Source: Bugula neritina (taxonomy: Eukaryota; Animalia; Bryozoa). Taken from it: DNA of 64,000 nt. Under the pieces are notes generated by a model, which saw only the letters and a list, made by a program, of their open reading frames with translations, made no database searches and was not told where the DNA came from. Each line of letters begins with the position of its first letter. Position 1 is the first letter of the stretch. The stretch is from assembly GCA_964035545.1 (NCBI GenBank), contig OZ037767.1, positions 3,173,680 to 3,237,679 on the forward strand, written 5' to 3'. A program made the position numbers and the translations under genes. Positions 13,330 through 52,999 of the stretch are shown in pieces.

Positions 13330-13386
<57 letters not shown>

Positions 13387-18350: not shown

Positions 18351-18393
<43 letters not shown>

Positions 18394-26009: not shown

Positions 26010-26150
26010 TAACAATTATTTGGACAATAAAGTTTAAGTTGCCTGCATCTTCAACAAAGGAAAAATTGAGCTGTACTGACTCATTAAACAAAAACTACCA
26101 GTAAAAAGCTATTGCAAAAGCTTCCACAAAAAGCCTTCCTAAAACAATAC
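26010..26150 (+). repeat. Unclassified interspersed repeat, copy 1 (inverted relative to 53000-53150)
   Basis: caattatttggacaa..ttgcctgcatc..ggaaaaattgagctgtactgactca..aaaagctattgcaaaagcttccacaaa aligns by eye to the reverse complement of 53000-53150. Confidence 0.75.
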
Positions 26151-27562: not shown

Positions 27563-30500
27563 ATGTGGAAAAGGTTGCGGATATATTTATTTCGAAATAA
27601 ATTGAAAGTCTTTACTATCATTTGGATTTTAATTTTATCAGTCAACATTTACCAACAACGTAAAAGTCAGTCAACGTACATAGAACTAGATAATGCAGCT
27701 GAGAAAAACCAACTACACAAACAATCTCGACTTCCTGAAACAAAGGCAGCGCCTCTCCAGATCAAGTCAGCAAATAAAGGAGATAGAGTAAACTCCTTCC
27801 AACCTTTTTCTCTGTATAATGAACCACTAGATAACTCTGTTTATGGTAAGTGAGTTGGTTATACTTCTGCTGTGTTGAAGAGATATAAATTGAGAACCTT
27901 ACTGTCATAAGTGAGTCATAACGCTGCTGCCAGTAAATAATGTGTACTTTTTGAGGTGAGAATAATTATTTTTGAAGTAAAGTGATTCAATCTGGGAACT
28001 CCTATGTTCTAGATGAGAAACAATGCAAACAAATTATCTTCTCAAAAAATTAATAAACTAATAGAAGTCATGGTATCAAAAATAAAAAAAAACTTGAGCA
28101 ATTAAAGTGTATACAATGCTTGATGTCTCATATTGAACCTAGTAGTTTGGGTTTGTGCAAGCAAATTTCAAAAATAATCTTTTAATGTTAATTGACCACC
28201 TTCTAGTCTTCTAAACTTACCGTTAGCTTTACTCTTAGTTACCATTTCAACTGTAGGCCTATGCAGAAATAACCCAACCTGTAGGTGCTACATTTTACTA
28301 TATTTCTAATGTACTCTTATAAGAATCAACAGAATCTACAACCATTCAAAAATCCCAGTTTGAAAACGGCATTTTAAAAATGAGCAAATTTAAAAAACTT
28401 TTATTTTTGAATTGTAATTTTTGAAACTATTTCATAAGTCTGAGTTCTTATTTTTGCTGTGTTACTTTAGAGCACATACCTGAAAGCTTCCGTACTAACT
28501 ACTCAACTGTGAAAAGTATAACTTACAGTTTCTCACCTACAATCAGAAAGGAAGGACCAGGATTTACCTTGATTACCATGTTTAACTTATTTACAGGTAA
28601 CTCTGCATACTTGTACTGTGTAGTGTTATATAAGATTGGATAATCTTAATACTATAATACAATCATTTGTCAAGAGATTATTTGCCTAGATGTTTAAGTA
28701 ATCATAACATAATTCTACATCAGAATCTCAGGCTTCTGATAGTCAAAACTCTAGACTCTATAGAGTTTTGTGTTAATGAGTGGGCAACTCCTTATTGCAA
28801 CTTCTAAATATTATATTACTGTAGTGCATTCATAATTGCCAGCCTGTAGGCTGTTTGAATGAAAATCTAATTAAGTTGAAATGCAATAAAGATGGCTTTC
28901 ACAGTTTTATTAGTCATCATCGCTATTATTTGTAGTTTCTGTATAAATACTTTAGCTGTAGATACTGTAGCTGTAGAGAATGCATATCTTTGGAAGTTGT
29001 AGCTATAACTATAATTATTTGCATATAGTAGCAGAGTCTTGCTATCTTTCAGTGAAAAAGGAAGAGAGAAATAGTAAATAAACTAATTGATTTCTATATT
29101 AGGAGAGAAATAAAATAGAACTCAAGAGGTTTCTTTTTGTATGAATGGCGTAATTTCTTTCTGCTTAGGCTGTGCTTTTTCAGTTCTAGAGCCGAAAAAA
29201 ATTCTTTTTACAGTATCATTTAGGACCTGGGCTTTTAAAAACCCAACTTTTGTTGTCAACAGTACATACTAATTTTTGAAGAGAGTAGAAACTAAATATA
29301 TTTGCTTTAAATTTATATTATGAAGACAATTAACGTCATTTAGATAGCAACAGATGTCTTTAATCTCATCCTTATCCCATTTCTTATCGCTGTCTAGTTT
29401 GCACATAACTATTGCTAGTTAATATTTTCTAGTCCTTCTTACAACATATTATTATCATTATATAACTCAGTACATGTTTATTTTTCGCTATAATCCACAG
29501 GACAAGCTATAGAAGGATACGACAAGGAAAGTTTACAAAATCAAATCAATAGAAACTGGGAGTACTTATCAACTATAAAAGAGAATATTAAACATGAACA
29601 GATCAAGAGGGTTGTCTTGCTCTACGCAGATGATAACTCTATCAAGGTAATCTGATTGGTTTTATTCAAAGGGTTAAAAGTCAAAGTTGATAGTTGGTGT
29701 AGAAATCGTGTCCCCATGCATTATGCAATGAATTTCTCATTTGGTGTGTATATAGGAACAGTGTCAATTGAGTGAAACCACAACAATAGAAATGTGTAGT
29801 TTTTTCATTCGTTATGAAAATTAATATTTGATGCTTGAGTGAAATAGCTTTACTTTATTACTTTTTGCTCTTTTGTACTTCAAACTAACACAGTATACAA
29901 GCTGAAGCAGCTAAGAATATAAATGTAAATACCACCATGCTTTATAATATAGCATATTATTGCTATACTGATGTTATTATTTATTTTATGCTATAAATAA
30001 GCACGCTATTGTAAAGTATCACCTTGCAAACATATGTAAACATAAGAAATATACAATGGATGTTATGTAAACATTCTGACAAGTGAATATAATAATAATG
30101 ATGTTAGCAGGCAGCTGCTAGTACTACCACTGCAGGTAGTGAGTAGTGAGATTTATATTATTATAATAGTTATACAAATTCCTTCTAGTTTTATAATATA
30201 TATTTTTATGTTTAATATTTTCTATTCTAATAGGCTGGTGATTCTGTAAGTTGAAATTGGAGAATAAAAAAATTACTTTGAATGTGTTTGAAGAAAGTAC
30301 AAAGCAAAACATATAAAATAGTAAGCTCAACTTTGCCACAAAGAGCAAACTCGATATGATTGAGATCTACTTATGACTCACTAAGTCAAAACCAATCGAT
30401 GAATAAACTTGAAAAACAATTAGGCAATAAAAACTGCATTTTATATCATTTTTGCTTACCTTTTACAAATTCAAAGAGTAAAATGTGAGAATTAAAGGGG

Positions 30501-32686
30501 TTTTAAAAATTTACTGAACTAGTTGAACTAAACGAAAGATTTCAGACATTAAACTCATCTTGATTATGTGTAGAGTGAATTAATGTGCTTAGGAAGTGGC
30601 TACAAGGTTTTGAAGTTTTCTAATTTTGCCAACTTATTATTCTAGGTGCTGTACCAGCAAAACTGGGTGAACAACTCCAAAATATTTCCCATGAAGATAC
30701 CAAGACTGATTCACATGTCAGATTTCTTCAATATATCATCAATATATTTACTAGATGAGCCAGTCATAGCTGCTAATGGAGATATTCGTACGTTATTATT
30801 CTGGTTTGTTGGTTTTGTTGTGTTTGGTCTAAAGCTGAACAATGGTACATAATTTGATTAAATATTTATAGCATTGATGGTAGCACATAATGAATGATAA
30901 TTTCTTTTATTATAAATTTGTGTTCTCATTTTGTTTTTTGTAATTTAAAAATGTCATTTTAATCAATTTTTGTAAATTTTTTATTAGAGCTTTTTAGGTA
31001 TATGACCTACCATTAAGTTAATTTAATTCTAATATTATAAATAAATTATAATATTTTAAACAATTTTGGTTAAATTCCAACCTCATATTTAAGTATTAGC
31101 TACTATATCTTTATATGTTTACTACATAATATTTTAGCAAATAGCATTGCTTTATTTTTATAGTAAATATATGTCTCTGGGATGGGCATTCTGGTTGACC
31201 ACCCTGACTTTGAAACCTTTTGTACCAGTTCTGAGACTACTAAAAGACTGCATAACTAAAATACATGTAGTTTACTTATAATTGTGCTATCTTTTATTTA
31301 TATATGTTTATTTATACTATTATTTATGAACGGATTTATCTATATATTCAGATATTTATCTGCATATTTATTTATATAGATTGTTATATTTTGTGTTTTC
31401 ATTGTTTTATAGTTATTGGAGAAAACTTTGACCAAATAGATACTATACGACTCCGAGATACAAAAACTCTGTATACGCTAACCAGGCATGGTAATAGGGG
31501 TTTTGGAGATTGCGTGGCACAATCAATGTGTCTAATGAAATACTACGGTAAGATAGCAGTATGCATTATGTTATACATGATAGTGTATCATACATTACGC
31601 CTTATACATTATATAGTATTATATTCTATTATATGTTATACTTCTTGTATAATATTCTTTAAAACTCACACAAGTTTATATTTGCTATTCATGTGAGAAA
31701 CCTCTGATAGAAAGGGTTTTTGTTAGAACAGGCTAAGTATTTGGTTTAGATGAGGCTCAGGAGCAATTATGACTGGATGCTCTTCCTAACATCACCAATG
31801 GCCTTTGTCGGGTTGAACCCATAACTCCGTGTTCACAAAGCAAACGCTTTAACCCCTAGACCACGGCTGCTCCCCTTGTATAATATTCTTTACACGTGTA
31901 AATATTGTATATATATTGTATGTATATTGTATATATATTGTATATATATTGTATATCTTATATATCATATATCATTCTCTGTTCTTCTGTAAATCTAGGC
32001 TCCCATGACACACATATATTCAGGCTAAAGAGTCCGGTACCAGCTACAGCACTGCAACACCTCAACTACCCTGTGAATTTGCAGCAAGCTGAAAATGGTA
32101 AGTGAAAGTAAAATATGTAACTTCTACTATATTGTCTGCTTTCTTTTCTTTTGCTTGTATATTAATCATTGCTCAAGATGTATGCAATAATATTATCTTT
32201 TTAGTAGTTTTATCAGTTTTATGGTTTGAGAAGTATGCAGTAAAGTAACAACTATAATAATATGTTAATAATAGCTTTGCCAGTTTTGTAACTGGTATTT
32301 GCATTCACTACAGTATAAATATGAAGTTTATAAACTCTAGCTACTTCAATATAGTGATACTTCATTATTGTAAACTATTTTTGCCTTCAATGAAATTCAA
32401 ACCACAGACCTCCGGTCTTGCAAGCTGGTGCGATAAACACTACACCACAGGGGCTACAGGACTCCTAACAGCAATAATATCTGTTACAGGTATGATAGGC
32501 ATATTAAAAACGGAACTGAAGTTTACAGTGTACAATCCCTGCCCTATCCTCAAGACCTACCATATACACTGCAGCCAAATAGCAAAGAGACTGAAAAAAG
32601 GACAGGATTCTATCAGGGACCCTCCTTGGAGTATTAGAATAATAAGAACTAGTCGGCCGGTCCACTCTCTCAAATACGGGCCGTAG
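27563..32686 (+). CDS. Uncharacterised type II membrane protein, putative GT-A-fold glycosyltransferase; about 375 aa
   Basis: 7 phase-consistent exons: 27563-27845, 28471-28596, 29501-29646, 30646-30787, 31413-31547, 31999-32097, 32490-32686 (1128 nt). Short basic N-tail plus signal anchor (VFTIIWILILSVNIY) and a stem, then RNWEYLSTIKENIKHEQIKRVVLL, VIAANGDILI, YTLTRH, GSHDTHIF, AEN, VYNPCPILKTYHIH. The gene model is solid; the enzyme call is an inference. Confidence 0.75.
31712..31873 (-). mobile_element. tRNA-derived SINE copy in an intron of the putative glycosyltransferase
   Basis: Reverse complement begins ggagcagccgtggtctaggggttaaagcg (A box), then gggttcaaccc (B box), then the core ggtgatgttaggaagagcatccagtcataattg. 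Colinear with 55182-55348. Confidence 0.85.
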
Positions 32687-34747
32687 TGGTAGCCACCCTT
32701 TACTAAGCATTCTGAACTATAGCTATATTATACTTGTTCTATAGTTTTTTGCAGTAGCATCATATGCTATATGCTATATGCTATAACATTATGTTGAATG
32801 ATATATATTTTATTATATCAGCTGCAATGAAAATGAGTTACTAATACTGTATTGTTTTTACATGTAGCATAACTATAAATATAAATTGATTATTTTGTAT
32901 GATATCTTGGTAAAATCTAATATTTATATAATATTAAAATATTTAATTACTGCAAAATCTTAAAATACGACACCAGACTGAATTAGAATTAAAAAGTATA
33001 ACTTGTACATTAAGTGATAGCTAACAATACACAAAAAAACCTTTTACTCAAAAGCCGCTGTTACAGAAGCTTCAACCAATTAAAACCATATCAAAAATGC
33101 CACACCCATTGTAAGGTAATGGTGGATATATGATGCATTGCATCTCTCTGTACTGTTAGTAATATTAAAAAGCCTTTCTCAATTATTTCAACTAGCATTT
33201 AAACATTCTATATTTCAACAAAATATTTTAGAGTGTAGCTTAGTTTCTATAAAACAAAGCGTGGACATTATATTATATATGAGTAGCTGCCATTGATGTA
33301 GATGCGAATGCAGATGTTCAAACCGATACTAAGACTGACAAATTTCATTATATTTCTTTAGAAACATAATACAATTCATGCAGCTTCTCATGCAGTTATA
33401 AAATTGAATAGCGCACAAGTTAGATTAAACATGACTTAGCAATTTCAATTCTGTATAGAAGAAAGTTTGTAAGTGACGAAGAAAGTCAACTAAACTTTTG
33501 TATGCATTTTGGAGAAATTTAATCCCTGAACAGAAATATGAACCAGGCGAATCATATTGACATGATAATTGAATAATTCAATAATACAGCTCAACAGTTT
33601 ACTGCTACTTCCTCCTACGTGGGTTGTGGTAAACATAGACCTACATTTCTATAGCTTTATCATTTGAGTAATCTATGTCGGCCATCTTTGATTGTAGGTC
33701 AATAAAATTTTATACCCTGCATGTTTGTAGGAAAGAGCAGCCATGTGTGCCAAGCATAAAATTCATTTTTTGACAATATTCTTCTAAGTTCCTAAATGAA
33801 GCTAATTAAGTATCTAAGTATCCCAAACTTGTGGTAAATTTCTCAATTTTTGCTGACGAGAAGTTTTGAATTTGAATCATATATAATGTAAGTTATGTTA
33901 CACGAATATAGTTTCACTCCAACAGTGTATGGAGGCAAGCATGTTCTATACAAACTATATACTATAGAAAGACACTAAGGTTTTCAACATGTCCTGCAGC
34001 AACAAAGAAAAGCCTGTGTACCAGATTAGAAATGTGGCAATAGAAGTCATGCTCCTTCAAAAATTTTAGCCTAAACCAAAATCTATTTAGAAAATTAAAG
34101 ACCTTAGGTTATTTCAAGTTATTGCAATTCACAACAGAGTTTTCTACTCAAAGTATGCATGTATTTACCACGGCTGCAACATATCTCCAGATCTAATTAT
34201 GTCATCAAATAATTTCATTGATAATCTTTAGGATTCCCTTTTGAATAACATACATACTTTGCTAACTGAATGACTTTTTGACCAAATATTTAGTGTTCTG
34301 TAGCCTTGCTTCTAGGCATAAACAAACCCTTATTAAACAACCAATATCAGAGTATTTATACCAGTAGAAACAAAGCTAATACTTGAAATCTAATTAGCCT
34401 AGGAAATATCTGTAAAGAGCGGGAGGTACTATTACATGCCCCAACATTGTCACGAATAATAAAAAGATGTTTATCCGGATGAATAACTGAGAAGTGATGA
34501 AATTACATGTGCTAAATTACACAGCACTTTAATATAATGAAATATGTTTGTTCACTGCTGAATCAATGTTGTTGAAAAAGAGGAAGTGCATGCTGTTGAT
34601 CATATCTATTCAGGGCAGATCAACAAGTTGTTGTGTGCATTCAGGATACTGACATACCACTAGCTGTTGGTATCATTAGACACTCACGCGAGCACTAATA
34701 TTTAGTATCACTCTCTGATTGAACTCTTTTACCTGCTACAATCTCTT

Positions 34748-35658
34748 ATGGCGTCTAATCCACTATTCCTACTTATATTTGGCGCCGTCTTTGCTGAAGG
34801 TAAGTTTTTCTTAGTTAGAAATGTCCAGTAACTGTTTACTTTGTATCTGATGATGGTTGCCATGTATTATTAAAGAGGGTAGATTTTACAACTTGTATAC
34901 CTAAGTTGGGTCATTTTATAGGAGCAGTAGTGGAGAAATTGAGGTATAGACTCAGCTCTATAATTTTCTTAGTAAATTTTGCTTTGGGGCTCAGACTGAA
35001 ACTCTTGGGAAAACATAACTTCTTTTGATATATTTCTAATTTAGAGCACATGGTTTTTTCTCAATTTCTCCATTACTGCACTTACCTAAGTTGGGTACTC
35101 ACTGATAATAAAAGTATTGTCTTTTTACAGCAACAGTCCTTCCATATAGCTATGAATTAATTGGTTGCTATCAGGATAGGACCATAAACAGAGCATTATC
35201 TGAGAAGATGATGGACATGAGAGCAGCTGCCACAGTGGAGCTATGTGTCAGCTTTTGTTACGATTGGAGTAAGTCAACATGTATTTGAGTGATTGAACCT
35301 ATTTATATTGAGAGCAGCAGACTGTAGTGGTTAAAGCACTTGCATATAATATAGTTATAGGTGTTAGGCCATTAGTTTGAATTCTGGCAGTAGAATTAAG
35401 TTTTCAAAACCCCATCAAGGGCTTTCACAGTGTTGGAGATTTCAAACATCATGATTTGAAAATTAAAACCCAGTCACCTATCTTATCACAACACCTGATC
35501 TCAATTTTTAGTAGTAGTATACATACCAGATTAGTGTGGTCAATGACTGTTATTTAGTATTTTGTTATCTATTTCTTAAAAGAGCTGAAAGTTTAAAGCA
35601 ACTGTTATTACATTTGCTTCTACAACTTGAATTTGATGGTTTTTAAAAACTACAAAAC

Positions 35659-35724
<66 letters not shown>

Positions 35725-38647
35725 TTGAATAAAATATTCATATTTTAGTTGTACCTATATGCTAAAGCTGTATATACGATACAGTAAATATCCTAATAGC
35801 AGTTGCAATCCTTCTTTACATTTTTATTTCTAGAAGTCAAAAGTTTGCTATTAGAGTGATCTTTATTTTCTAGATTTTGAATATGCCGGACTACAGAATA
35901 GAGTTATGTGCTACTGTGGAAACTCAGGCTACAATAAATATGGATCTTCGACTAACTGCAAAAAAAAATGTAAAGGTGACTCAAGTCAAACTTGTGGTGG
36001 TAAAAGGCAGAATACTGTATATAGAATAAGTAAGTATAGCAACATGTAATTTTACAAATTTTAAAATATTCAAACTTTAAAAAAACTCATTAGTATGGGT
36101 GCGTGCGTGTGTGCGTGGGTTTGTGTGTTGTGAGTATAGTTTTTGCTTAAGTTCTGTTCAGCATGTAACTTATCATTATATCTATTAGTTTTTATTAATA
36201 TTTATTGCTGTAAATATTTCTTACTATATATTCAATTTACTTCCTGTTACTATATGTTACAATTTTGCTTACTAGTTCCGATAACAAGCACAGCCATGCC
36301 CACTACTACAACTACTACAACACCAACTACTACTACAACTACTACTACAACTACAATGAAGTCTACCCTAACTACCACTTCCACTACACCAGATGTCTCT
36401 ACTACTACAGCATCTATAAGTCACCAGATAACAGCAATAGAGAGCATCTCAGATGTTGGTAATGCAACTCTAACTGATGACGGTACGTGGGTATTACTAC
36501 TATATGCGTATATCATATATATGCATATTATGTGTATTATATATTTATTATATATAATATATATTATGTATATTATGTGTGTGCATGCATATTTACATAT
36601 GCTATTGTATTTACAAAAGTAAACTTAAAAGCACTTTATTAATTCATTATTCATTCATCTAAAAAACAATTTTCAACTCCTGCTAGGCGACCAGGTATTC
36701 AAATTTGAATCTTTTCAAAGTTTGATTTATACATATACTGACACATTTTCAGAGTTACAGGCAAACCAACTAACCAATGTCTAAGAATTTTCTCAGCTCT
36801 TTGACACTATAGTGAAATTCTTTAATAAGCAGTTTTATTATGCTCCTAAATGATATTATATGTCACTGAATATATGATAAAATTTGCTTTACTAAAAAAT
36901 ATAACAAATTAATTAAGTCATATTTTTCAAAAAAGTTTTTGTTTACTTTTGTAAAGTTATGGCTTATTTTGCCGAAAAACGCAGCTTCTCAAATATTTTG
37001 ATATTGATGATTTGCAATAAAACCTATAATAACTTGTTGATTAAGTTGTTTTCACAATAAGTGTTTGATGTATCTGCAAGCAGATCATAGGCACATAAAC
37101 ACTCTTTGTCAAGAAATTGTGAAAATAACTTGTTAATTAACACCTAATAAAATTTCTATTTATTTAAACAACATAATATTATATTAAATGTATGCTGTTT
37201 TCTATAAATAATTCAACTTTCAATAGTAGAACAAAGTGTACACATAGCTCAATGCTTTGCCAAACTGAGCACTTATACTAAAAGCCTGACCCTACTTGAA
37301 TCTTTTGAACAAAACATTTGAATAATTACTCATATTAAACGTAAAAGTAGTAATTCTGTGTTTCAACATAGGAATGCCTGTGATCCTGGGAGTCTATATA
37401 GGAGCTGGAGTAGGGGTGGTGGCTGTAGCTGCCCTTATTGCCATTCTGATATGGTTTCTTGTGGCAAGGTAAAATTTTATTACACTTATAGGATAACATT
37501 ATAACCATTTATTTTTTGTTATTTTTCATGCAAAGTAGCAGGTTTTAACTAACTTATAAGTATCTGCAGTTTCTATTTTAACTATTTCAATTATAATATT
37601 ATAAATTATAAATTATCATACTATTTTAACTATTTCAATTATAATATTATAATTAAGCATTAGAGCTCCTAGTTTGGCATGTTTTGGGTAACTTATTTCT
37701 ATTTTTGATAATTTTTAGAGTGACTTATTGTTTTTAATTGTACAATTAATAACTCCTTGATGAAAACATGCTACATTGTTAACAAATAGCATCTTAAATT
37801 GGCTACTGTTTATTTATGCTCGTGCCTACAGATTTGAAAACGTTTGACTAATTTCCCATTAATTCCAGCTCATTCGTTTCATACAACAACTTATACAAAT
37901 GAACTGGCATTGATTTTCGTTTCTGCTTGCCTCATCAATTAAGTTTTATATAAAATATTTATGTTTATTTAGAAGTTTGAACTTATTTTATTTTATTTAT
38001 TTTTGTTTTATCAAAATTTTTAACAAGAAGTAGAAATAATATGGGGTGTCACCAAAAGAAGTAACCATACGGCCCATTTTTACCTAATAGTAAAGGAGGA
38101 TCGAGGAGTGTATTTAATATCTTGAATTGCTTATATATATTTACATCAACAAAAAAGCGTGTGAATGTATAATTGCAGGGGAGTCATAAACTGTAAAAAA
38201 GATCAACCTGATAACAGCCTGAAGTACAACAACCCGACTTACATGGTGACAGGCATAACTGACCGCAACAACTACCCTGACTCAGCTACACCAAACTTTA
38301 CCTGCGTGCCTGCGGAGTCTCCTCCCCCTAGCTATAGCGACAGCATGATATACGCAAATATTTTTCCATATTCAGCCAATCATAATGACTCTACTAATTG
38401 TTTAACCTATGACACTCCTGTAACCAATCAACTTGTAGCTAACCCTGATCAAGGTGTCACCGAAATGACAGCTGAACATTCAACCAGCTCACAGGTAACA
38501 GCAAGTAAACAAGCAAACAATGGAGATGTATATGCAGTTGTGTGTAAGAGTAGGGGAGACAACTTCAGTGGTGACGCAGTATATTCCTTGGCAGGCGAGG
38601 CTGAAGATGATTTGGTTGTTGTAGAAAATGACTTGTATAGCACATAG
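34748..38647 (+). CDS. WSC-domain type I transmembrane receptor A (SP-WSC-Thr-rich stalk-TM-Tyr-motif tail); 372 aa
   Basis: Exons 34748-34799, 35131-35268, 35874-36029, 36276-36482, 37372-37468, 38179-38647 (1119 nt). WSC: YELIGCYQDR..RAL..ATVELCVSFC..YAGLQNRVMCYCGN..CKKKCKGDSSQTCGG..VYRI. TM: VYIGAGVGVVAVAALIAILIWFLV. Tail: YNNPTY, PPPSY, IYANI, VYAVV, VYSL, ENDLY. Confidence 0.9.
35310..35400 (+). mobile_element. Degenerate SINE tRNA-like head in an intron of WSC receptor A
   Basis: gagagcagcagactgtagtggttaaagcac..agtttgaattc resembles the 5' end of the 55.3 kb copy. Confidence 0.5.
35661..35720. repeat. (TA)n microsatellite
   Basis: Direct. Confidence 0.95.
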
Positions 38648-39601
38648 CCTTGCTGTTAAATACAAATAGTGTGTAAATATAATAATATGTTATATTATAT
38701 AAATATGCTATACTAAATAATTGCTTGACAATCTGTGTATAATAGATAATATCTCTAAATAATAAGCATACAAACTACCACATTATATAATATAGTACAG
38801 TATACTATAACATATAAATAAATACAAAATGTTATTATTACAAAGTAAAATGCATTTTTTGTAAAATAGACTTATTCTTTTATACAATATATAAATAAAA
38901 TATAACATCAATAGATTAAGCTGAAAAGACAATGATTATTTTATAGCAGTATCAGATTCACGCATATCTTATAAACTTCATCATGTGACAGCTAATTTCC
39001 TGAGTTTTTATTAGGCCAATAATAGAGGCATCACAACACTAGGCAATATGGTGTCTCATGGCTTTTCAAATTGAACATTCTTGATTTTTACAAAAAAGCC
39101 CCATATGCTATGTTCCCACCTGTCCATCAATAGAAACTAATAAATCTATCAATTGGAATAATATGTAACAGGTTAATTTGAGTCTGATTTTAACTGGTGG
39201 CAGACCATAGACAAATCTCAACTTCCTCGAAGTAGAATATGGTAAACAGTTGCGATAAGCTGTAGGTCAATCAAACATGTTCCAAAAGCCTCTGTACCAA
39301 CCTTATAGCAGCATATATCATTAACAGTTTCTAAACCATCATATAAACTGTAAGAAAGCTCAGTCTCTTGCATGGCTCACAGTTTATCAAAAACAAACAT
39401 GAGATTAGATAAGAGCATTGCTTAAGCTTCACACCACACAGTGATTGTTGAAAACTAAAAACAGAGAACTTAAAGCTACGGTGGTTGACTATATATAATC
39501 AGTATGCAACTTTATTAAATATTCAATGTAGTTCTTAGTGAAACTTGTAATTGACAGTAACTGCAGTTTGTAAACCAATAGCTTACAGTATTCTGTCAGG
39601 C

Positions 39602-42600
39602 ATGACTTTCTATTGGACATCCTTCTACCTTGTGGTTTACATGTATGGTACCATTACTTTATGTTACAATGGAAGAGGTAAATATATTTGCTATATTAAT
39701 GTAATACTGCAGTTAAGTTTTCATACAGGTTGTAGAATTACAAACTATAGAATTTATAAGTGCATCATTTGTAAACAGGTGATCATAAAATATATGGAAT
39801 ACTTTGTAAATTAATAAACTATACTGTTACCGCTAATATTATTTTAGTGCAGGCGTATAAAACTGTTCATCTCGGATGCTTTAAAAATGGAATAGGATCT
39901 GCAGATCGCTTATTAACGGGTGCTACCTTAGATTTAGAAAGTCAGGCTACAGTGGAGTTTTGCACAAGGTGGTGCTTTTTCAACAGTGAGTATGAAAGCT
40001 GTCTCTAAAGCTTACCAGTTAAAAAGTACGCAAATTAATATGTAGTTTCCCTTTAAGATTTCTTTCTGCCGCATGCACACTATGCATATATGGAAATCAA
40101 ATGTGATAAATAAAAGTGCATGTACTACAATATGTAATACACAATACATATAATGAAATGTAATATTTAATTAAGAATATATGATATATTATGTAGAATG
40201 TTTTTATTTGTGTTTCAAATATCAATGTTGTTTATATCAAATGTTTTGTAAATTAGAGTTTCAATACGCTGGGCTGCACTTTGGATGGAAATGTTCTTGT
40301 GGAAACACTTTACAGAGAAACCTCCAAAAAAGTGCTAGTTGCAACCTACGATGTAGAGGCAACTCTAGTCAAGTGTGTGAAGGATACTTTAGTATTTCTC
40401 TTTATTATAAACAAGGTACATATCATGTACTGCTACATGTATTTTTGTGTGTAGGCTTTTTGTGAGTGCAATATTAGCCTACTTTCTACTCAAATCTAAG
40501 TCTACACAAACTGCTATGGGCTCGCATTTGCGTAGAGAAAGGAAAATTAGGTAGCAATTTAATAATAGCTTATTAACCTTTTGAAATCATCTTTGATCCA
40601 AGTTGTTGCAATAAATAAGGCTATAACATATCCTACCATTTCTATTTAAATATAAGTTAGAGACTGCCCATAAGTTATTGCTCCTTTTTAAAAGTTATTT
40701 CCTACTACACCGATATGATAAAAAGTGATGCTTATATATATACTTGAACTATTTCTAAGTACAGTTACTAAAGACTTCACATTTATATTTTTACTGTATA
40801 CTATTAATGTAAAAAAACATAAATGTAATATTTGTTTGAAATATTATATAATTACATAGATCATATCTATGCTGCATTACAGCACTGTGTCACAATCACT
40901 AATTTAATTGTTGATTATCAAATAATTTCTTGACTTTTTGCTACAAAGTCAATAAAAAGGCCTATACTGTATTTATATTTTATGTAAAGAAAGTCTAAAA
41001 GACTATTCAACTACAATAAATAAGAAAAATACCCCCAAAAACATTTTCATGAAAAGTACAACTATTTCAAATGCTAATCCAGTTTAGTAATAAATAATTG
41101 CCTCAATAAATATGAAACTGGGGCAATCCATATTTTATAGAAATCATTGTAAACTTGATAGATTGGTAGACTTGGTCTATTTTACAGAATCTACAACAGC
41201 TTCTCATGCGGTAACTTTAACATCTGGAAATACTGAAACATGGCTACCAGTTACTAGAAGAAGGAAAGCCTCATCTACAGCTCTACCTACTCGATATCTG
41301 CCAACTGTGACGGTTGCCTCCGCTACTCCAGTAACACCCTCCGGAACCTCAACTGCTAAAATGAAAAATAAAAACTCAATTTCCAAAACCTCAGTCACTA
41401 AACCTGTAACCCCGGCAGTTGCTTTTAATTTTTCTACAGTCATATCTAAGCAGATTACAACATCAGAAGGGAGTAATATCAGCATATATGTATCCAACAA
41501 CCCAGATAATCTACCACAAGCAAAAGGTAGAGTATAATGATTATATTATGGTACAATTATAGCTATGCATGCAATATTTGCAGCACCAATTAGGGTGATA
41601 TTTCAGAACTACATGGTAGAATTTTGTGTGACTATAAATAATGTTATATAATATTTTTTATTAAGACGTAAACAAAATGTCTTAATTGGGTAATAGGATT
41701 TTCTAATATAATTTTATATTTTCTTTTTTGAAACTTAGCGAGATAATGCTTATATAAATTTTCATAAGAAAGAAATCTTTTGCTACATAGAAAGCAAAAT
41801 TAATTTTAGTCAAGTCAATTCTGTGGCAATATCTTGAGTTCGCCATTAATTTCTTGAATTTGTATTCAAACAACTTATTGATTGCGAACCTATATAACAT
41901 AAATACATTAATTTTATAGATAAAACTGCGACAGAAGATATGACAAAGGTTTATATAGGAAGTGGAGTTGGAGCCAGTGCGCTATTGATTATAGTTTTCA
42001 TTAGCATAATAGTAGCAATCAAAAGGTGAAGAATATTTCATGTTGAGTGATCAAGCTTCTGATGTTAAGAAATTTTCTACCATATCTCTGTATATAACAT
42101 ATATTACCTAAACTAACAAAAAATTGATTATTGTTGTGAGATCTATGCAGTATATTATCACAATTTATACAGATTGTATACTAATTTCTTTTTTTAACAA
42201 TTGATTTTGTAGAAGAAAAGCTAATGGTAGTAGTCCTACCTCTCGCAAAAACACTGCTCACTATAATAATCCAGGCTACGAGGCAAGTCCCATTACAAGA
42301 AAGGCAACTCCTAATTTGTATGAAGAAGATCATACCTATTCATCAATTGATGATTGCTTGGGAAGTGATTTGAATTCAAGCTCACCCTACTACAGTGTAC
42401 CACCTTTAGCTTCAGATTCCAAGACTATGTCTGTGTCAGAGCATAGTACGTGCGGCGATACCACCTCAGCAAAATTAGGAAAACAGGCTTCAAAAGATTA
42501 CATTGCCATCGGTGAACAGGCAGAAAGATTCTCACCACTCAATGAACATGTAAAAGACAACTCCAGTACTAACAATAATGTCTCAATTCATGGTGCCGCA

Positions 42601-42912
42601 ACTCTTACTAAGCATTGTGGCATACCTAGTGAAGTTGTAGCTCAACCTGATGTATCTACTGAGAGAATTGGTAGCTGTGACGGGGGAGATAACTCTGAAG
42701 CAGACTCACCATACTACAGTGTTCCACCGCCACTAGATAAAGATTATGAAGTCACATCCGACTCTGTATATTATAGTACACCGTGTAACACTCTCACACC
42801 CTCTGGGATAGAAAGTCAGTTGCCAGATGGGTTGGTTGGTGATGATGAATTGCCTACAGAGGAACTTTATTCTGTGGCCTGTGATTTTCAAGATGATTTA
42901 GAATCAGAATAA
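39602..42912 (+). CDS. WSC-domain type I transmembrane receptor B (long Ser/Thr stalk, long Tyr-rich tail); 505 aa
   Basis: Exons 39602-39677, 39848-39985, 40257-40415, 41188-41526, 41920-42025, 42213-42912 (1518 nt). WSC: HLGCFKN..RLL..ATVEFCTRWC..YAGLHFGWKCSCGN..CNLRCRGNSSQVCEG..SLY. TM: VYIGSGVGASALLIIVFISIIVAI. Tail: YNNPGY, TYSSI, SPYYSVPP x2, YYSTP, LYSV. Confidence 0.88.
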
Positions 42913-43049
42913 GTAGTATGAAACCTAAGACTACGCTATCTGCAATGCCAAGTGTAATTAATGTTCTCCTATATATTATGGAGATTTGAGCTTTCTATTA
43001 TATAATAGTTTATTAATTAACATTTATGAAATTGCAATACATGTTATAG

Positions 43050-43165
43050 AATGGTTCAAGCACTAGTCTAGTATATGGTGCATGGTTCAACTCTTGACAG
43101 AGCCACTATAGCTAGAGTGGTGTCAGAAAAAGCATTCAGTCATAACTGCTGTCTCGCCTCAAAGT
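43050..43165 (+). mobile_element. Degenerate SINE copy downstream of WSC receptor B
   Basis: tggttcaagcac..ggttcaactc (B-box-like)..gtggtgtcagaaaaagcattcagtcataactgct resembles the family core. Confidence 0.55.
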
Positions 43166-45075
43166 TTTTAAACCATGTTAGTACAATAATTATATAAACT
43201 TCCAATTATTATTATTTTGACAGAAATAAAATAGACATATTAACATTAATAATAATGCTTATTTATAAAGAACAGTTTGACAACTGTTAGATTATCACAA
43301 TGTAATAGTATGTCTTACCAGTGATAAAGCTGCTAGATGAAAGAGAACGTTCACTCCGTTTGTCTGGGTTTTATCTGCCTTAGCTTGTAGCTATCTCAGC
43401 TATACGGTGGCTGGTAGGGCAACTCTTAGTAACACGATAGCTCACGTATCTGATAGGCTATTGTCATTAGCTAAACTCTCAGTGTGCCACTATAACAACA
43501 ACTATTTTTTATGGTTTATAGGCAACCTTATAATTTTTACTGTTGTCTGCTTCATTTTACAGTTTTAGTTTGTAAAAACAATAAAAATCCCCACCTCTTT
43601 TTATACCACTAGAAAGCTTCAGTGAGCTAACTTTGTGCGTAGACATATCTACCTATGACATAAAAATATATACATATTATTTGAACACATTTATTAATGT
43701 TGAATTATACATTTTAATCAGTATTTTTGTCTTTCTACAGAGTAGAATGCGTACAAGCATAAAACTTTATGCTTACTAGAATAAGTACGCCCCAAGCTTT
43801 CAAAAGATGTAATAATATAACGCTGGAGATTTCTATACTAGCTGCTACTCAACAGTGAATTATATATAACTTAGTTGATTGACTGCATAATGTATAATGC
43901 AAAATTTGAACTTTGCTCTTTACTAATAACCATAATAATAAATAGTAAACTGGGAATGCCCTTGCTTTTCTGATTCATATATTTAACTTCTATATATTAT
44001 GATATAAGCAATTTCTAGTTATTTTTATTATGAAGTTAGAATTGCACAGTTGATTTAAACATTTTTTCCTTGTATAAAGATCTGTCTTTCGCAAAAAAAA
44101 GTATGTTGAATAATTTCCAGTGTAAGATCTCGAGGTCTGAATCATATATAAAATACATAATAGTAATACGAAAGTCTACAGTCTACGCAATAGCTGATCC
44201 TCTTACTACATTTCTACACTCAAGTTGTGTTCTTGTTTTGTGTTTATATTTTATTATGCAAAGCAAAAAGTACAATTGTATTTCCACAGTAAATGAATGG
44301 ATCTACTCTAGTTTTTCCTTCTTTGTAGCCTACATGCTAAAGCTAGTATACAACTAGTATACACTATAACTAGAACATGATTTGATGGGCATCTTGTTGG
44401 AATTTGAATTTTCTTGGAAACCTCAACTAAAAATACAGCAGTAAATTAGGAAGGCATGGCTTGTAGATTTTGCAAGCTGGTCAAACAGGAGAGAAAATCT
44501 CCTTATACACCAAACACTGGAACAAACAAATATTATATTTAATAATTTAAGTAAAGGGAGATTGCATTTAGCTATATATAGACTCACATATGGCATTTAT
44601 ATACCATATTACATTCTAAGTAACTCTACCTATTTTTGCCAGCTAGTGATCACCACCTGACTGCCACTAGAGGGTGCTACACTTTAATAGCCTAAATTCC
44701 TCAGTATTCCATGCAGTTTTTAGTTTGAGGTGCAACTACAGCCAGAACAAACATCTCTTTCAAAATACTTTTATTAAAAAAATTACTGAAATTCTACACC
44801 AGCCTGCTGTGAGGGTTATAAACACTACGCAACCTTAGTAGAATCATAGTTGGAAATTACTTCAGTATCAAATATCAGTCTATAGATATTGTGGGTGTCA
44901 ATGCATATGAATGCTTGATTTAATTAAAGTCGCAGCGCTATTGTGACAAATCTTCTGCTGATGTCATCATATGAATACATGGCATGACTCAGTTCTTTTT
45001 GTCATAATATTATTATTCTTAGAGTGAGAAACTATCAGTTTACTATGTGGACTAAACAAATATAGTTACGACAGC

Positions 45076-46411
45076 ATGAGGGTGCTGCTAGTCATCTCAG
45101 TTCTTCACCTCTTTCGCTGTCAAGGTATGCATGTATTAGTTCTTCATCTTATTAAGACTGATTTTTTACTGATATTACAGCTAGCCATTTCGGCTTTGCT
45201 TCTTATGTTGTAAAAAATATATGTATGTTATTTTATAGGCTGTTTTAGTTAAAATTTGTGATCTTTGTTGCCTAGATTTGTGTCATTGTTTTTTAATGCT
45301 GCTTATGTTGGTTTAAGTTGCATATACTCGGCACATTTGTTGTGACTTTAACTGATAAAACTGTCACTCAGTTTTCTGGATGGCATCACCAGAATCACTT
45401 GTTTGTTTGTGAGTTTTTATTTAAAAATACTTTGATGACAATTAAACTGTAGAGGTATTAGCTAGCAATATATTTATAAGTAGTAAGCAAGTTAGTAAGT
45501 ATATATTAAGTAGTAGTAAGTAAATAGGCACTAGTAAGCTAGTAAGAGTACTTTGTTTGTAATCTAAGCAAAAATATTTTTTATTTCCCAGAGGTTTTAT
45601 TGACAACTGAAATTGTTGTGTGAATTAGAGCCAAGGGGGCTTATGAACTCTGTTCCTTACCAACCAATTAATGTTAAACCTACACTTGAATATTGTATAC
45701 ATACTATTCAAAATAACTGGCATATTAGTAGGAGTTACATGTAAACTGTGTACTCATCATATGATCTTAACTTCAATTTGAAGATGCAGTGAATTTGTTT
45801 ATATAAGACTCTGAGTCTAATCAAAAAGTCAATTCACTGCTTTCTCATATTAAGGAGACTCAAATGGTTTTTCTGCAAATTGATTTTTTTATCATGGCTT
45901 GAACATCAAAAAAGTAACTCCTTTAGCAATATATTAATTTAATTGAATTCAAAATGACTTTTCGAAACTTGACATGATTGAAAAAAGATCCACCTTGATT
46001 GCTTTTACAACTTCCACTTATTGCCTCACAAACATGCACCCTTCTTTAGAAAAATATAATCATTTATGGTAACAAAAATAATCAGTAAGTTTATTTGACA
46101 TCAGAATGAGCTTTGTATGTAATCTTCTATTATAGATGAGCGTTCTAATAAATCTACTGACTTCTCATTTCAGCCACATCTCAACCTCTCTATGAAGTGA
46201 AATATAAAGGTTGCTTTAAGGACTGGTTTATCAGAACATTAAAAGGAAGCTATGCAGATTTGGGTAGCACAGCAACAATAGAAGCATGTGCCCAGATGTG
46301 CTTCTTGATGGGTAAGATAAGGTGCATTTATCATGAGCTCTACTACTACTGCTATTGCTGCTTCTGCTGCTACTTCTGCTGCTACTTCTGCTGCTGCTGC
46401 TACTGCTACTG

Positions 46412-46461
<50 letters not shown>

Positions 46462-46908
46462 ACTTCTACTGCTAATACTACAACTACTACTATTGCTGCT
46501 GCTGCTGCTACTGCTACTGCTACTGCTACTGCTACTACTACTACTATTGCTGCTGCTGCTGCTGCTTACTATACTGCTACTCCTATAGTTATTTTCCAGT
46601 ATATGCTAAGGTGAACATTGTGATTTCAGTATATGCAAACTATTAACCTTCTCAACTTATACTAAAAATATGACTCTAAAGTATATATTGCTCTCTAACA
46701 GTAACTATATGCTGCAGGTTATAAACTGATTGGGCTACAGAACTACTCGGAATGCTACTGCGGCAATAGTCTGAAGAGTTTCAAGAAAAGTGGCTGTAAG
46801 TTGCCATGTAGAGGCAACTCCACTCAGATATGTGGGGGACATTGGCGAAATTCTGTGTATAAGATAGGTAAAGGCACCTCATAAGAAGTATCATTACCAT
46901 ACCACAAT

Positions 46909-46946
<38 letters not shown>

Positions 46947-46947
46947 A

Positions 46948-47006
<59 letters not shown>

Positions 47007-48434
47007 AACACACAAACACAAACACACACACACACACACAAACACAAACACACGCATGTAGCACATGTAACGCATATAACGCATGTAACACACACACATG
47101 CAACACACATGCAAAACACACAGTATATACATTCTATTTGTTATAGTTGAACCCAAGGTTCTCACAACCCCTTCTTCCACCACATCCTTTGATGTCACTA
47201 CAAAAGATATCATTGAGGAAAATAGAGGTGAGGCTGCAAAAAGCACGAAGTAAATTGTATATATACTAGGATATCTTCAGCATGCTATTATTAAATTAAA
47301 GGTCATACTTGTCTCTAGCTGAGTATATATAATTAGCTTAGACTGAGGGTGGTATATGAATGACCTGATTGTCATTTAAAACCATCCAATAAAACATGCA
47401 GTAGCTAGTAGTTGACCTATATTACTTATAATATAACCTAGATATGCCTATGCCTATGCTTGTATGTACTTGGTCTTGTTATATTACTTAGTATTAAGTA
47501 ATTAATTTCAATTAAACATTATCCTAATGTAGTAATTATGCATAAATTGTAGTAAAATGGAATTGTACTGATATTTACTGTTTTTTTGTAGAGGAAAGGC
47601 AAAAGATAACTATTGGATTTGGAGTTGCAGTTCCTTTGTTTATAGCAATATTGATCATGATGATTGTCATCTTCATTGGTAAAAGGTGAGTCATAATTTC
47701 AAATTCTATAACTTTCTAGAATCTTCTAGAAGGATATAGAAGTCTCTGAGAAAACCACCCTAAATTGTGCTACAAGATAACGGTAAAAAGTTCAGCTGGT
47801 AAACACACTATTATGCTTAAAAGCAGCCAGTTGAAAGCAGTGTAAACTTTCTACATTAATGTTAGAATTTGCAATTTATTTTGTATATACATTTTATTAT
47901 TATGTCATTTATCTACAGTTTTCATTCACAGAGGTGAATGCAGAATTTCAGTTGTATTAAACCCTACTACTTCTAAAGAAATTTTGTAGCCTGAAAAGTT
48001 GTTTTACCATGTAAAATAAACCATGCAGCACCAGACCTAAACACTAGAAAAAATTCATTGGTCCAAACTTTTACAAAAATGGTTGTTTTAACTTTTTTAC
48101 ATTAATTGTAGTAAGTAGATCACAGAGAATTCAGCTATATTGACAGTAGCGACTAAAAATATTGCTGATTGTTCACTGCTGTAGAGTGCAGCTTGATGTA
48201 ATTGCTAGATTTTAGTAAATAAACTTATGGTAATTTTCTAGCCGCAACCAGACAAAGAAAGTGTCTGTAGACAATACACCAAAGTCATCGGAACAATCTG
48301 AAGAAGACGGTTATGAGAAGTTAAGGAAGACTGTGATTGGCCAGAATGATCATGTGTATGCTTCAGCCTACGAGACAGTTGATGGGGCAACTCCCTACTC
48401 ACTTACACACTCATACTGCAACATACCTAAATAG
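45076..48434 (+). CDS. WSC-domain type I transmembrane receptor C (short stalk, hemITAM-like tail); 234 aa
   Basis: Exons 45076-45124, 46174-46311, 46718-46867, 47147-47227, 47592-47685, 48242-48434 (705 nt). WSC: YKGCFKDWFIRTL..ATIEACAQMC..IGLQNYSECYCGN..CKLPCRGNSTQICGGHWRNSVYKI. TM: ITIGFGVAVPLFIAILIMMIVIFIG. Tail: EEDGYEKL..VYASAYETV..PYSL..SYCNI. Confidence 0.9.
46340..46582. repeat. Compound (CTA)n/(CTG)n trinucleotide repeat, intron 2 of WSC receptor C
   Basis: Direct. Source of the poly-L, poly-T/A and poly-C/Y ORFs in the track. Confidence 0.95.
46912..47122. repeat. Imperfect (CA)n microsatellite, intron 3 of WSC receptor C
   Basis: Direct. Source of the (VC)n ORFs. Confidence 0.95.
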
Positions 48435-49920: not shown

Positions 49921-52203
49921 TCACCACCTAACATCTGCTTTGTGTTCTTCTAATAGACTCCAGCGTTTGATGGTCTCATAGCCTAGTATGATGGTGAAAG
50001 AGAAGATGGTGGACTGAGCCATACGGGCAGTAATAGCCTTAGTGAATAGCTTCATGCCTTCGTACTTCCACAAGTCCGACAGAACTGAGACCAGTGTACC
50101 TTTACCCTGCACCTAATAACATAGAAGAGTGGAGCCAAGGCTAAGGAATCTCTATGTTATCAGCAACTTCATACTCAGGGGAGATAAAGCCAAAACAGAT
50201 GGAAGTGGGGCATGTTATTGGAACAAATGAAGCGTAACGTGTAACACATAAAACAATGTCAAATTATTCAAATATAATGTAACATTGATGGAGCATTTAT
50301 TCAAAAGCATGCTGGTAAGAAAATAAATTAGACTGTCAAGAACAAAAGCTCACACTTTCAATAAGTGCAAAAGCCATAAACATCACATAATGCACTTTAT
50401 AAAATGCTATGCCAATTTGATCCCTTGCGATTATTGTGATCCCCAATACACCGTAATAAGATACATTGCATCAACATAACAACATCGTGCACCAACTCAA
50501 CTCACCTGTATTCTAGTACGGCTAACATCCAGGAAGTTGGTTAGAAGAGTAGCTGTACAGCCACCCAGTGGAGCAGCAACACATTGTATAGTCAGTCTAG
50601 GAACCCAGCTAGGACTGATCCCCGCCAGCAAGTCTACAACCAGATAATGTGACACTCCTTAATATAACATGTCTGTAGTGTTACACCCCTTACTATGTGT
50701 GTAGTCTTACACCTCTTACTATGTGTGTAGTGTTACACCCCTTAATTTGTGTGACGCCCCTTTTTCTGGATAACAAAACAATGATTGTACTATTACCAAA
50801 AGTATTCTTCTATCTAGAGCTTGTTGCTAAGCAGCATAAGTAAGACTAAAACATTGCTGTAAGCAATATATACATATAATTACCTGAAAATCTGTCATAA
50901 AAGAGCCACCAGAGGGCGCTGTGAGGAGCATATACTAGCACCGATATGAAGTAGCCTTTGTAGAAGCCTCTAATGCCATAGTTAGAGTATACAGCTTTCA
51001 TTACTTTGAAAGAGGCGCCAAGCCTGTTCACAGAACAAGTATTTATTAGGTCACAAAAAATACTTGTCCATATTAACTACAGTGGCCAATGTCTATTATA
51101 ACATATCATAACACAATACAATATATAATATAATATACAGCATAACATAATATATATTATATGATGTAATATGTATTATATTATAATATAATATATTATA
51201 ATACATTATATTATAATAAAATATATTATATAATATATTTTGTCACCAAAATGAAGGAAAGACAGTTTCCAACAATTTGGAATCTAAATTACCAGTAACT
51301 TCAAAGAACTAGTAGCTAGATGTTCATTTCCTTGAATACATCGGTCATCTCATAAAAACAAACTAAACACAAAACTTACAGCCAGCATAAGGAAAGCTTT
51401 CACAATACAGTGAATAAATATAGCTTACCTTGACCCTGAGGCGGTGTCAATGTTGAGAGTGTTCAGGTGGGTTCTGCCGGGTTTGATGGGGTGACCCTCC
51501 GTCTTAGTGTTGCCGAGGAGCATCATGTGCTGAGTCACTATGTCTAGAGGCACCACAAATACCTGACTCGCTGTCGACGCGCAGCCACCAGCTATAAAAC
51601 TTTTCAACTTGCGCGACTCGACATTGTGATTATGCAGCCATTGCCGTGAGCCCTCGTAAACAGTGATATACGCCATCTATAGAAGAGGAAATGACATCAC
51701 TAACAGGAAGTGTGACTGCAAACACACTTAGTTAATGTTTGTACAGAAAAACAACAACTAAAAATAGCACAACTCCAACTACCCAGAATATATCTCATGG
51801 TTTCTAATAATTAATATTTATTTCAGTAGCAGGTCTTAGCTTTTCTACCTTCATGAACTCAAGAATGGATAATAACTATAATTGAGAGTAACACATTATG
51901 TAATAGAAGGTTTAGACACAAGACCTGTGGAACTACAAGTAGGGAGTTGATCCAATACCCTCTATACAATCCTTTCACACCTTCTCTCTGTGTGATCTTC
52001 TTAAAAGCATCCCAGGTGCCATTATATAATATCTTCTTGTTTTGAACTTGGAGCCTCGTCTTCACAAGACTTAGAGGATATAATGTCGTACGAATGCAAG
52101 CACCAGACAAGAGCGCCAGGGGGTAATATTTGGTTTTGTCCATCATGTTCAACTCGATTACTTGTATATTGGAGGCATCTGTGGTCTCCACGCCTTCAGC
52201 CAT
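49921..52203 (-). CDS. SLC25A44: Mitochondrial carrier SLC25A44 (branched-chain amino acid carrier family); 328 aa
   Basis: Exons 52203-51925, 51676-51429, 51023-50884, 50633-50506, 50112-49921 (987 nt). IQVIELNMMDKTKYY..YPLSLVKTRLQVQ..YNGTWDAF..KGLYRGY; KSFIAGGCAS..VPLDIVTQHMM; GFYKGY..YAPHSALWW; GYETIKRWSL. These follow the SLC25A44 pattern. Confidence 0.92.
50650..50762. repeat. About 25-bp minisatellite x4 in an SLC25A44 intron
   Basis: Unit approximately gtgtagtgttacaccccttactatgt. Confidence 0.75.
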
Positions 52204-52999
52204 TGTCACCACCTTTATTATTAAAATATTCTACTCTGTCTAAAATATAACCTTAAGATTTTGATGGTTTTATGGTAAGGGTCATTAAGTAGAAATATAT
52301 AATATAGAGTGGATTGTCCTTGTGCTTAAATGTGTGACTACATAATTGGATGAGATGAATCAAAATAATATAACATCTCTAACTACATTACAGCTATGCT
52401 TTATTGTCGAATCATAAATTAAAGTGGTTGGTGTTTGATAGTTTATTTCTGGTAATGGCTTCAAATTCCATACATAACCTGTTAAATGGTGAAAAACATA
52501 TTATTGTGGCATACATAATCATCATACATAGCTACTTATTAGTTTTAGTTTCAGCTGCATATACTAGTTTTTTGTCCTGGGAAAATAAAAGCAATGTTGT
52601 CAACTAAAAAGATACTGTAAACAGGGTGTTTTCCCATAGATGTTTGATGCTCAGTTATCTGTTTCAGTAAATTAGAGAAGTCAAGAAAACTCAGTTGCAA
52701 AAGTACAATTACTATAAATCGACCTGAAATAATATAGTACAGTGTTTTCTTTTGAAACAATCACAACATTCTGATTTTAATCTAATAGCTAAATTAAGTA
52801 ATCAAAAGTCTGTACAAAAGTATTTTTTCGTTAGACTAAGACGTGACCAAAATTTATGAAACATCCATTATTGCTTATTTTTTTATTGTCAAACTAATAG
52901 TAAATGTAATAGGCCTACTAATATTAATACTAATACTAATAGTATCACTAATAGTAATACTAATAGTAATAGTAACTGTTTCAGTAGCTTTTTGGCAGC

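Follow-up and report, generated by a model that had tools for sequence, protein, structure and literature searches.

In animals, WSC domains are known from Kremen, polycystin-1 and the WSCD enzymes, and we know of type I stalked WSC sensors only in fungi. The fungal Wsc sensors consist of a WSC domain, a Ser/Thr-rich stalk, a membrane helix and a tail (PMC9024836). Here, we describe three tandem genes, referred to as A, B and C, found in a 64,000-nucleotide (nt) stretch of the genome of the bryozoan Bugula neritina (assembly GCA_964035545.1, contig OZ037767.1, positions 3,173,680 to 3,237,679, forward strand; hereinafter, the window, to which all coordinates below refer unless stated otherwise). 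In these three predicted animal products, the sensor layout of the fungi is combined with docking motifs of the animal tyrosine, phosphotyrosine-binding (PTB) and WW types, a combination that illustrates the free reuse of a phase-1 module. On balance, we lean towards the view that the trio are old tandem duplicates encoding stalked WSC type I receptors that signal or dock via tails carrying tyrosine motifs.

The resemblance to fungal Wsc1-3 encompasses an identical order of parts, a WSC domain with eight cysteines, a Ser/Thr stalk that is glycosylated in the fungi and would be so in the trio, one helix and a tail devoid of enzymatic domains. The differences are equally clear: the trio are animal genes with five introns each and have no fungal wall to sense, and their tails, which lack relatives, carry NPxY, PPxY and YxxL-type motifs. 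We also considered whether the trio descends from a common ancestor with the fungal Wsc proteins, down to the tail region used in cell-wall integrity signalling, and rejected this, given that the WSC part alone matches. A second point of comparison is Kremen1 and Kremen2, type I animal membrane proteins which contain the solved WSC domain closest to the head of the gene A orthologue. However, Kremen carries Kringle and CUB domains, lacks a mucin stalk, differs in its tail and binds Dickkopf rather than a glycan; in Pfam searches, neither Kringle nor CUB was detected in the exons of the trio or in the A orthologue.

The sequence-only reading of this DNA had proposed three adjacent six-exon genes on the same strand, with intron phases 1, 1, 1, 1 and 2. 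We translated the plus strand between positions 34000 and 49000, read each candidate exon boundary and re-derived all 18 exons, with results that matched this proposal. Genes A (34748-38647), B (39602-42912) and C (45076-48434) are neighbours on the plus strand, with six exons each; all 15 introns show AG...GT boundaries, and the succession of phases is the same in each gene. The frames contain zero internal stops, and the predicted products are 372, 505 and 234 amino acids (aa) long, respectively. The previously reported sizes of the stalk exons (69, 113 and 27 codons in A, B and C) and of the tails (155, 232 and 63 in-frame residues) were also obtained. Each predicted product begins with a signal peptide, followed by a single WSC domain, a stalk rich in Ser/Thr, one membrane helix and a domain-free tail; the identification as WSC-headed type I membrane proteins is supported by both Pfam and hydropathy predictions. 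The proteins of the window were searched exon by exon, and joined frames were used in codon counting only. No extra copies were found in the 64-kb window by tblastn with all 18 exon peptides.

Additional support for the gene models comes from other B. neritina sequences. The tail of A matched a sole protein cluster, a member of which is KAF6039091.1 (A0A7J7KLH7), a 388-aa 'WSC domain-containing protein' from Bugula neritina. This AUGUSTUS model from the draft genome has the same six-part plan and the same start as gene A, with a longer Thr stalk. The draft genome, published in 2020, was annotated by AUGUSTUS with transcriptome hints and was typed by its authors as S genotype (PMC7576161). We compared the window with contigs L001 and L002 from a Joint Genome Institute (JGI) metagenome and with contig L005 of the draft genome, which is collinear with positions 25031-42416. 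Contig L002 covers positions 38615-47122, which shows that the gene order A-B-C is kept. Collectively, the second-lineage contigs cover the boundaries of C exons 1-3 and all introns of the other two genes, with L006 ending before C. All covered splice sites are conserved, and indels are in-frame only in the exons, the introns being gap-rich. In DNA, the window is 80-88% identical to the other B. neritina sequences (that is, 12-20% diverged), with a synonymous divergence of 0.17-0.29, whereas the non-window alleles are mutually close (97-99% for the A tails and 90-100% for the B tails). The window and the draft and JGI sequences thus represent either distinct cryptic species or a very old haplotype block. 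Upstream of gene A, the same divergence of 12-20% extends over 10 kb or more and is therefore not specific to the trio. Introns 2 and 3 of C (46330-46610 and 46890-47100) contain long microsatellites, composed of a trinucleotide tract (poly-Leu, poly-Ala or poly-Tyr/Cys, depending on the frame) and a CA/TG tract, at which the alignment of C to the other lineage fails.

The first exons were chosen among upstream candidates. Exon 1 of A, with the start codon and signal peptide (34748-34799), is the best hydrophobic candidate among upstream exons with an ATG and a consensus donor, and its start is that of KAF6039091.1. Exon 1 of C (45076-45124) has a hydropathy of 2.72 and a good donor, and is 92% identical in L002. 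For exon 1 of B (39602-39677), which would encode a weak signal peptide, the choice fell on the best donor, and both the ATG and the donor are kept in L002. Poly(A) signals at A-C occur at background frequency and are uninformative. As far as can be judged from sequence, the splice sites, phases and open frames of the three gene models are correct and the existence of the three-gene WSC trio is confirmed.

The WSC heads are encoded by exons 2 and 3. Taken alone, exon 3 exceeds the 27.8-bit cut-off of the Pfam WSC family (PF01822) in all three genes, with 35.1 bits in A (35874-36029), 40 bits in B (40257-40415) and 43.8 bits in C (46718-46867), in each case over profile positions 34-82. Exon 2 provides the N-terminal half, corresponding to profile positions 1-35, with weak matches in A (35131-35268; positions 2-34, 17.7 bits) and C (46174-46311; positions 1-35, 15.6 bits) and no Pfam WSC match for the B exon alone (39848-39985). 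The full-length A orthologue yields 55.8 bits over positions 2-82. The 'identical' exon 2 of the sequence-only reading is identical in length, being 138 nt in A, B and C of the window, but not in sequence, since the three exons share only 30-40% protein identity, and the A exon 2 is 135 nt long in the other lineage. Each of the three heads contains eight cysteines, and all eight of A are kept between lineages. An AlphaFold model of the A-orthologue head (predicted local distance difference test score, 86.9) is most similar to the WSC domains of Kremen (5fws; TM-score 0.83, root mean square deviation 1.4 Å, 31% identity), of a fungal glyoxal oxidase (TM-score 0.86) and of the yeast Wsc1 sensor (PDB 7pz2; TM-score 0.74, 25% identity). 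From the eight cysteines and this model, the heads of the trio are predicted to adopt the PAN/apple-like WSC fold. The notion that carbohydrate binding by WSC domains is established was overstated: the Kremen WSC, the closest solved fold, binds a protein, and known WSC domains bind glycans or proteins.

Over the WSC exons, A, B and C are 30-47% identical in protein sequence. They are only three of many such domains in this genome, in which the WSC profile has at least 149 matches. In nearly all of these, an intron interrupts the domain near profile position 37; hence, the intron-split WSC domain and the phase-1 design are genome-wide properties of the module rather than a mark of the trio. The other WSC genes of the genome share this module, split by the phase-1 intron, but none of them has the membrane exon or any of the tails of the trio. 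For the WSC exons of both A and C, the best genomic matches come from a cluster at C3:15.15-15.9 Mb (51-59% identity). We accordingly rejected the possibility that the closest relatives of the WSC domains of the trio lie within the trio itself, because exons of that cluster outscore them. What the three genes have in common is adjacency, strand, exon plan and the start of the membrane helix; the position of the NPxY motif is common to A and B only. As three small genes, they offer a tractable entry to the large WSC expansion of B. neritina.

Several other WSC genes have different make-ups. At 1.5 Mb from the trio, L008 (G000:C3:4745000-4754900, minus strand) contains a type I WSC gene in which a Sushi/CCP-like exon sits between a WSC C-terminal exon and a membrane helix with a short tail. 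In L011 (G000:C2:7970700-7980600, minus strand), open frames resembling a Branch-type glycosyltransferase come after WSC exons, a layout that agrees with an Atlas cluster of 'protein xylosyltransferase' having WSC and Branch. Outside of B. neritina, a 415-aa protein from a European Nucleotide Archive metagenome (P0014), assigned to a eukaryote, combines two WSC domains, Thr-rich linkers, one helix and a tail with a PPxY motif. This layout indicates that stalked WSC type I proteins occur beyond Bugula and fungi.

The heads of the three genes evolve at different rates. Between lineages, the ratio of non-synonymous to synonymous substitution rates (dN/dS) is 0.41 for gene A as a whole, with 0.33 in WSC exon 2 and 1.0 in exon 3 (16 non-synonymous and 4 synonymous changes), and 0.57 for gene B, with 0.27 and 0.48 in WSC exons 2 and 3, respectively. 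In the C head, the corresponding values are 0.11 and 0.02. The non-synonymous to synonymous ratio of the A and B heads differs from that of the C head (Fisher P 0.0014 and 0.007, respectively). Thus, in these alignments, the WSC head evolves fast in A and B but slowly in C, where it is under strong purifying selection. In the A head, substitutions show no enrichment in loops relative to strands and helices.

The stalk exons likewise vary. The A stalk (36276-36482) is Thr-rich and mucin-like, with 63% Ser+Thr+Pro, and the draft-genome allele is longer by 51 nt, in frame. The B stalk (41188-41526) contains 42% Ser+Thr+Pro, so that the range across the stalks is 42-63%, and shows two 12-nt in-frame indels and a dN/dS of 0.89. 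The short C stalk (47147-47227) has canonical splice sites and is of phase 1-1. No Pfam family was matched by the stalk, membrane or tail exons.

Hydropathy analysis reveals one strong hydrophobic segment per product. The membrane helix is encoded by exon 5, located at 37372-37468 in A, where it has a GxxxG-type start, at 41920-42025 in B and at 47592-47685 in C, where the exon has canonical splice sites; the hydropathy peaks are 2.97, 2.79 and 3.06, respectively. None of the three helices contains a charged residue (Lys, Arg, Asp or Glu) inside the hydrophobic span. In A and B, exon 5 is nearly unchanged between lineages, with 0 changes in 97 bases in A and one synonymous change in 106 bases in B, compared with 9.6 and 12.3 changes expected from the rest of the respective gene (P about 6e-5 each). 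When A and B are combined and synonymous changes alone are counted, 1 is observed versus 8.8 expected (P 0.0015), and the introns flanking the membrane exons are only 56-80% identical (58-77% for A alone). This near absence of synonymous change suggests that constraint also operates at the nucleotide level, for example, on splicing signals of a small exon.

The tails are encoded by exon 6 (38179-38647 in A, 42213-42912 in B and 48242-48434 in C, each including the stop codon), which in C follows a canonical acceptor in the frame of exon 5. None contains a Pfam domain, in agreement with the earlier statement that catalytic domains are lacking. The same reading had described the tails as densely packed with Tyr motifs; these motifs are indeed under selection, whereas the density is corrected to a tyrosine content of 5.6-7.9%. 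The A tail is 86% identical to its orthologue, without indels, and has a dN/dS of 0.24-0.25; that of the B tail is 0.64. In A and B, motif scans detected a tyrosine-preceded NPxY at an equal offset from the helix (tail-exon residues 18-21 and 19-22, respectively). The A motif (NPTY, 38231-38242) lies about 20 residues past the helix and retains its Asn, Pro and Tyr in the second lineage, where only the x residue differs; the B motif (NPGY, 42268-42279) is conserved in L002. The C tail has no NPxY in the same scan. Additionally, A carries a PPxY motif (PPPSY, 38321-38335), which is the same in the second-lineage orthologue, and B contains a duplicated Tyr-Tyr-Ser-Val-Pro-Pro element. The C tail displays an acidic run followed by Gly-Tyr-x-x-Leu (EEDGYEKL, 48300-48323) and a motif resembling the immunoreceptor tyrosine-based inhibitory motif (ITIM; SAYETV, 48363-48380). 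Matches to the ITIM-like consensus number two in B, one in C and none in A, although matches this short arise by chance. Scans for the immunoreceptor tyrosine-based activation motif (ITAM), that is, two YxxL/I 6-12 residues apart, found none in the three tails.

The NPxY motif of the low-density lipoprotein (LDL) receptor family, amyloid precursor protein (APP) and integrin beta is a docking site for PTB adaptors and mediates clathrin uptake. The membrane-near, tyrosine-preceded NPxY that A and B have in common and conserve between lineages resembles that of these proteins and points to adaptor docking or endocytosis, although the ectodomains are unrelated and the likeness of the tails stops at the motif. 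In the B tail, residues within 3 positions of a tyrosine are 94% conserved versus 78% elsewhere (Fisher P 0.001), a value reached in 5 of 231 circular shifts; in the A tail, the figures are 92% versus 81% (P 0.04). Between lineages, 21 of the 23 tyrosines in the A and B tails are kept. Judged by the better conservation of residues near tyrosines, the Tyr motifs are the constrained units in tails that otherwise change rapidly and that, in all three proteins, are probably disordered. Together, the invariant helix, the conserved tyrosine islands and the uneven rates of the heads form a constraint map that shows which parts to mutate first.

The proposal of a lineage-specific family is borne out by the database searches. 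Within the genome, the tails of all three genes and two of the membrane exons yielded self-matches only, and no further copies of the genes came to light. Outside the genome, the A tail matched its own orthologue cluster only, and the helix and tail of the A orthologue gave zero matches. The B tail produced a single match, to its own orthologue, among 1.8 billion representative proteins. For the C tail, a metagenome search returned two GC-rich bacterial chance matches only and no orthologue. The whole A orthologue matched mostly fungal WSC proteins, via the WSC part (22-33% query coverage), but this fungal-rich list is probably skewed by Thr-run words. A search of the Protein Atlas produced one sub-threshold lead only, from a mollusc (score 0.76). 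Judging from these searches, the trio is restricted to the Bugula neritina species group.

If the trio are indeed stalked type I receptors, their mode of action can be outlined as follows. The signal peptide would be cleaved and the PAN/apple-like WSC head exposed as the binding module, kept off the membrane by the Ser/Thr stalk, which is presumably O-glycosylated and varies in length. The single helix, with its small-xxx-small start, probably packs against another helix, and the disordered tail would act through short Tyr-centred docking motifs. A ligand, either glycan or protein, could bind or cluster the WSC heads, and the readout might consist of tyrosine phosphorylation, adaptor docking and internalisation. 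In A and B, NPxY would recruit PTB-domain adaptors and lead to clathrin uptake, with the PPxY of A additionally engaging WW-domain proteins; in C, the acidic-Gly-YxxL and ITIM-like motifs would serve as signal elements. Several observations speak against such a scheme. Docking motifs are so short that chance would account for some of them; the B tail evolves fast overall; the least certain of all exons is the first one of B, its signal peptide reaching a hydropathy of only 1.66; and the comparison between lineages covers C only up to exon 3, short of exons 4-6 and the tail motifs.

Among the alternatives, a role as sensors or anchors of cuticle or matrix integrity fares best and deserves to be taken seriously, although we regard it as unlikely. 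The bryozoan body wall contains chitin, and in an animal counterpart of Wsc1 the head, borne by a stiff glycosylated stalk, would reach this wall and the tail would report strain or attachment. By analogy, such a function would be consistent with a layout equal to that of the fungal Wsc sensors (PMC9024836), with the fold match to the Wsc1 sensor domain, with stalk lengths that differ among paralogues and alleles and with the WSC expansion in the genome. However, the tails share nothing with the fungal Wsc tails, the nearest WSC domain by sequence and fold is that of the animal protein binder Kremen, and fast-evolving heads, as in A and B, are unexpected in a structural sensor.

Less probable still is the interpretation favoured by the sequence-only reading, namely, that the trio are paired immune or allorecognition receptors, with related heads for microbial or non-self glycans and activating versus inhibitory tails. 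The trio does resemble the KIR, LILR, SIRP and Siglec loci in being a tandem cluster of receptors with the same fold and strongly different tails, and the fast evolution of the A and B heads, with dN/dS about 1 in A exon 3, the divergence of the window allele from other B. neritina assemblies, the two ITIM-like motifs of B and the combination of acidic-Gly-YxxL and ITIM-like motifs in C all would fit. Nevertheless, heads that are merely 30-47% identical are far too diverged for paired receptors, and the helices lack a charged residue that could recruit an adaptor and the tails an ITAM, so that the supposed hallmark of such loci is missing. Moreover, there are three members only, with no further copies in the genome, and the divergence of the window allele is shared by 10 kb of upstream DNA. 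The orthologues are one-to-one with the order kept, and the C head is under strong purifying selection. Finally, the neighbouring genes are ordinary, with developmental or housekeeping roles, indicating that the trio is not located in a receptor-rich region. The trio thus offers no evidence of a new immune recognition system, although it may possibly serve recognition in some looser sense.

A more specific variant, which we consider highly improbable, holds that the trio are independently invented, WSC-based, lectin-type phosphotyrosine receptors. Under this scenario, C would signal via a hemi-ITAM (hemITAM) and a Syk-type kinase, like Dectin-1, A and B would be endocytic or scaffold partners, the nearly invariant GxxxG-type helices would pair, and surface glycans of microbes or symbionts would be tracked by the two fast-evolving heads, those of A and B; B. 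neritina hosts a vertically transmitted bacterial symbiont. The similarity to Dectin-1 and CLEC-2 lies in the concept of a lectin-like head and in the single YxxL of the C tail, a candidate motif that, together with the acidic run and Gly, closely resembles the published hemITAM consensus. Unlike them, C is predicted to be type I rather than type II, has a WSC rather than a C-type lectin head and carries an extra ITIM-like motif. Equally doubtful is that the models are partly wrong, with the loci spliced into one multi-WSC gene or B or C being unexpressed or decaying copies: cross-locus splicing is conceivable, as all ectodomain exons are of phase 1-1 and the A stop and B start are just 954 nt apart, and B has a weak signal peptide and an elevated dN/dS, overall and particularly in the stalk, but each locus has its own start exon, stop and intact frame in two lineages, A was called as a separate gene by AUGUSTUS with transcript hints, and B has conserved Tyr motifs and a membrane exon with hardly any change.

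The surroundings of the trio include, upstream, a CRIM1-like gene (5201-22305, plus strand), whose exons encode an IGFBP N-terminal domain, antistasin domains and several VWC domains, the last exon contributing a membrane helix. On the other side lie exons of a mitochondrial carrier (50849-52230, minus strand), a soluble Rieske-type protein (55334-55618, plus strand) and a DUF455 protein (57896-58213, plus strand). Between the CRIM1-like gene and A, at about 26200-32700 on the plus strand, the matching part of the draft genome (L005, 1353-7725) is annotated with a gene of 397 aa that has no Pfam domain. Conservation across this region peaks at 95-98% over a background of about 80%, and an open frame at 27515-27850 encodes a hydrophobic stretch followed by YxxL. 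A repeat of about 200 bp is present at positions 31660-31874, 55169-55346 and 19777-19900 of the window; in L005, two copies in opposite orientation surround the matching site, an arrangement that resembles a small mobile element.

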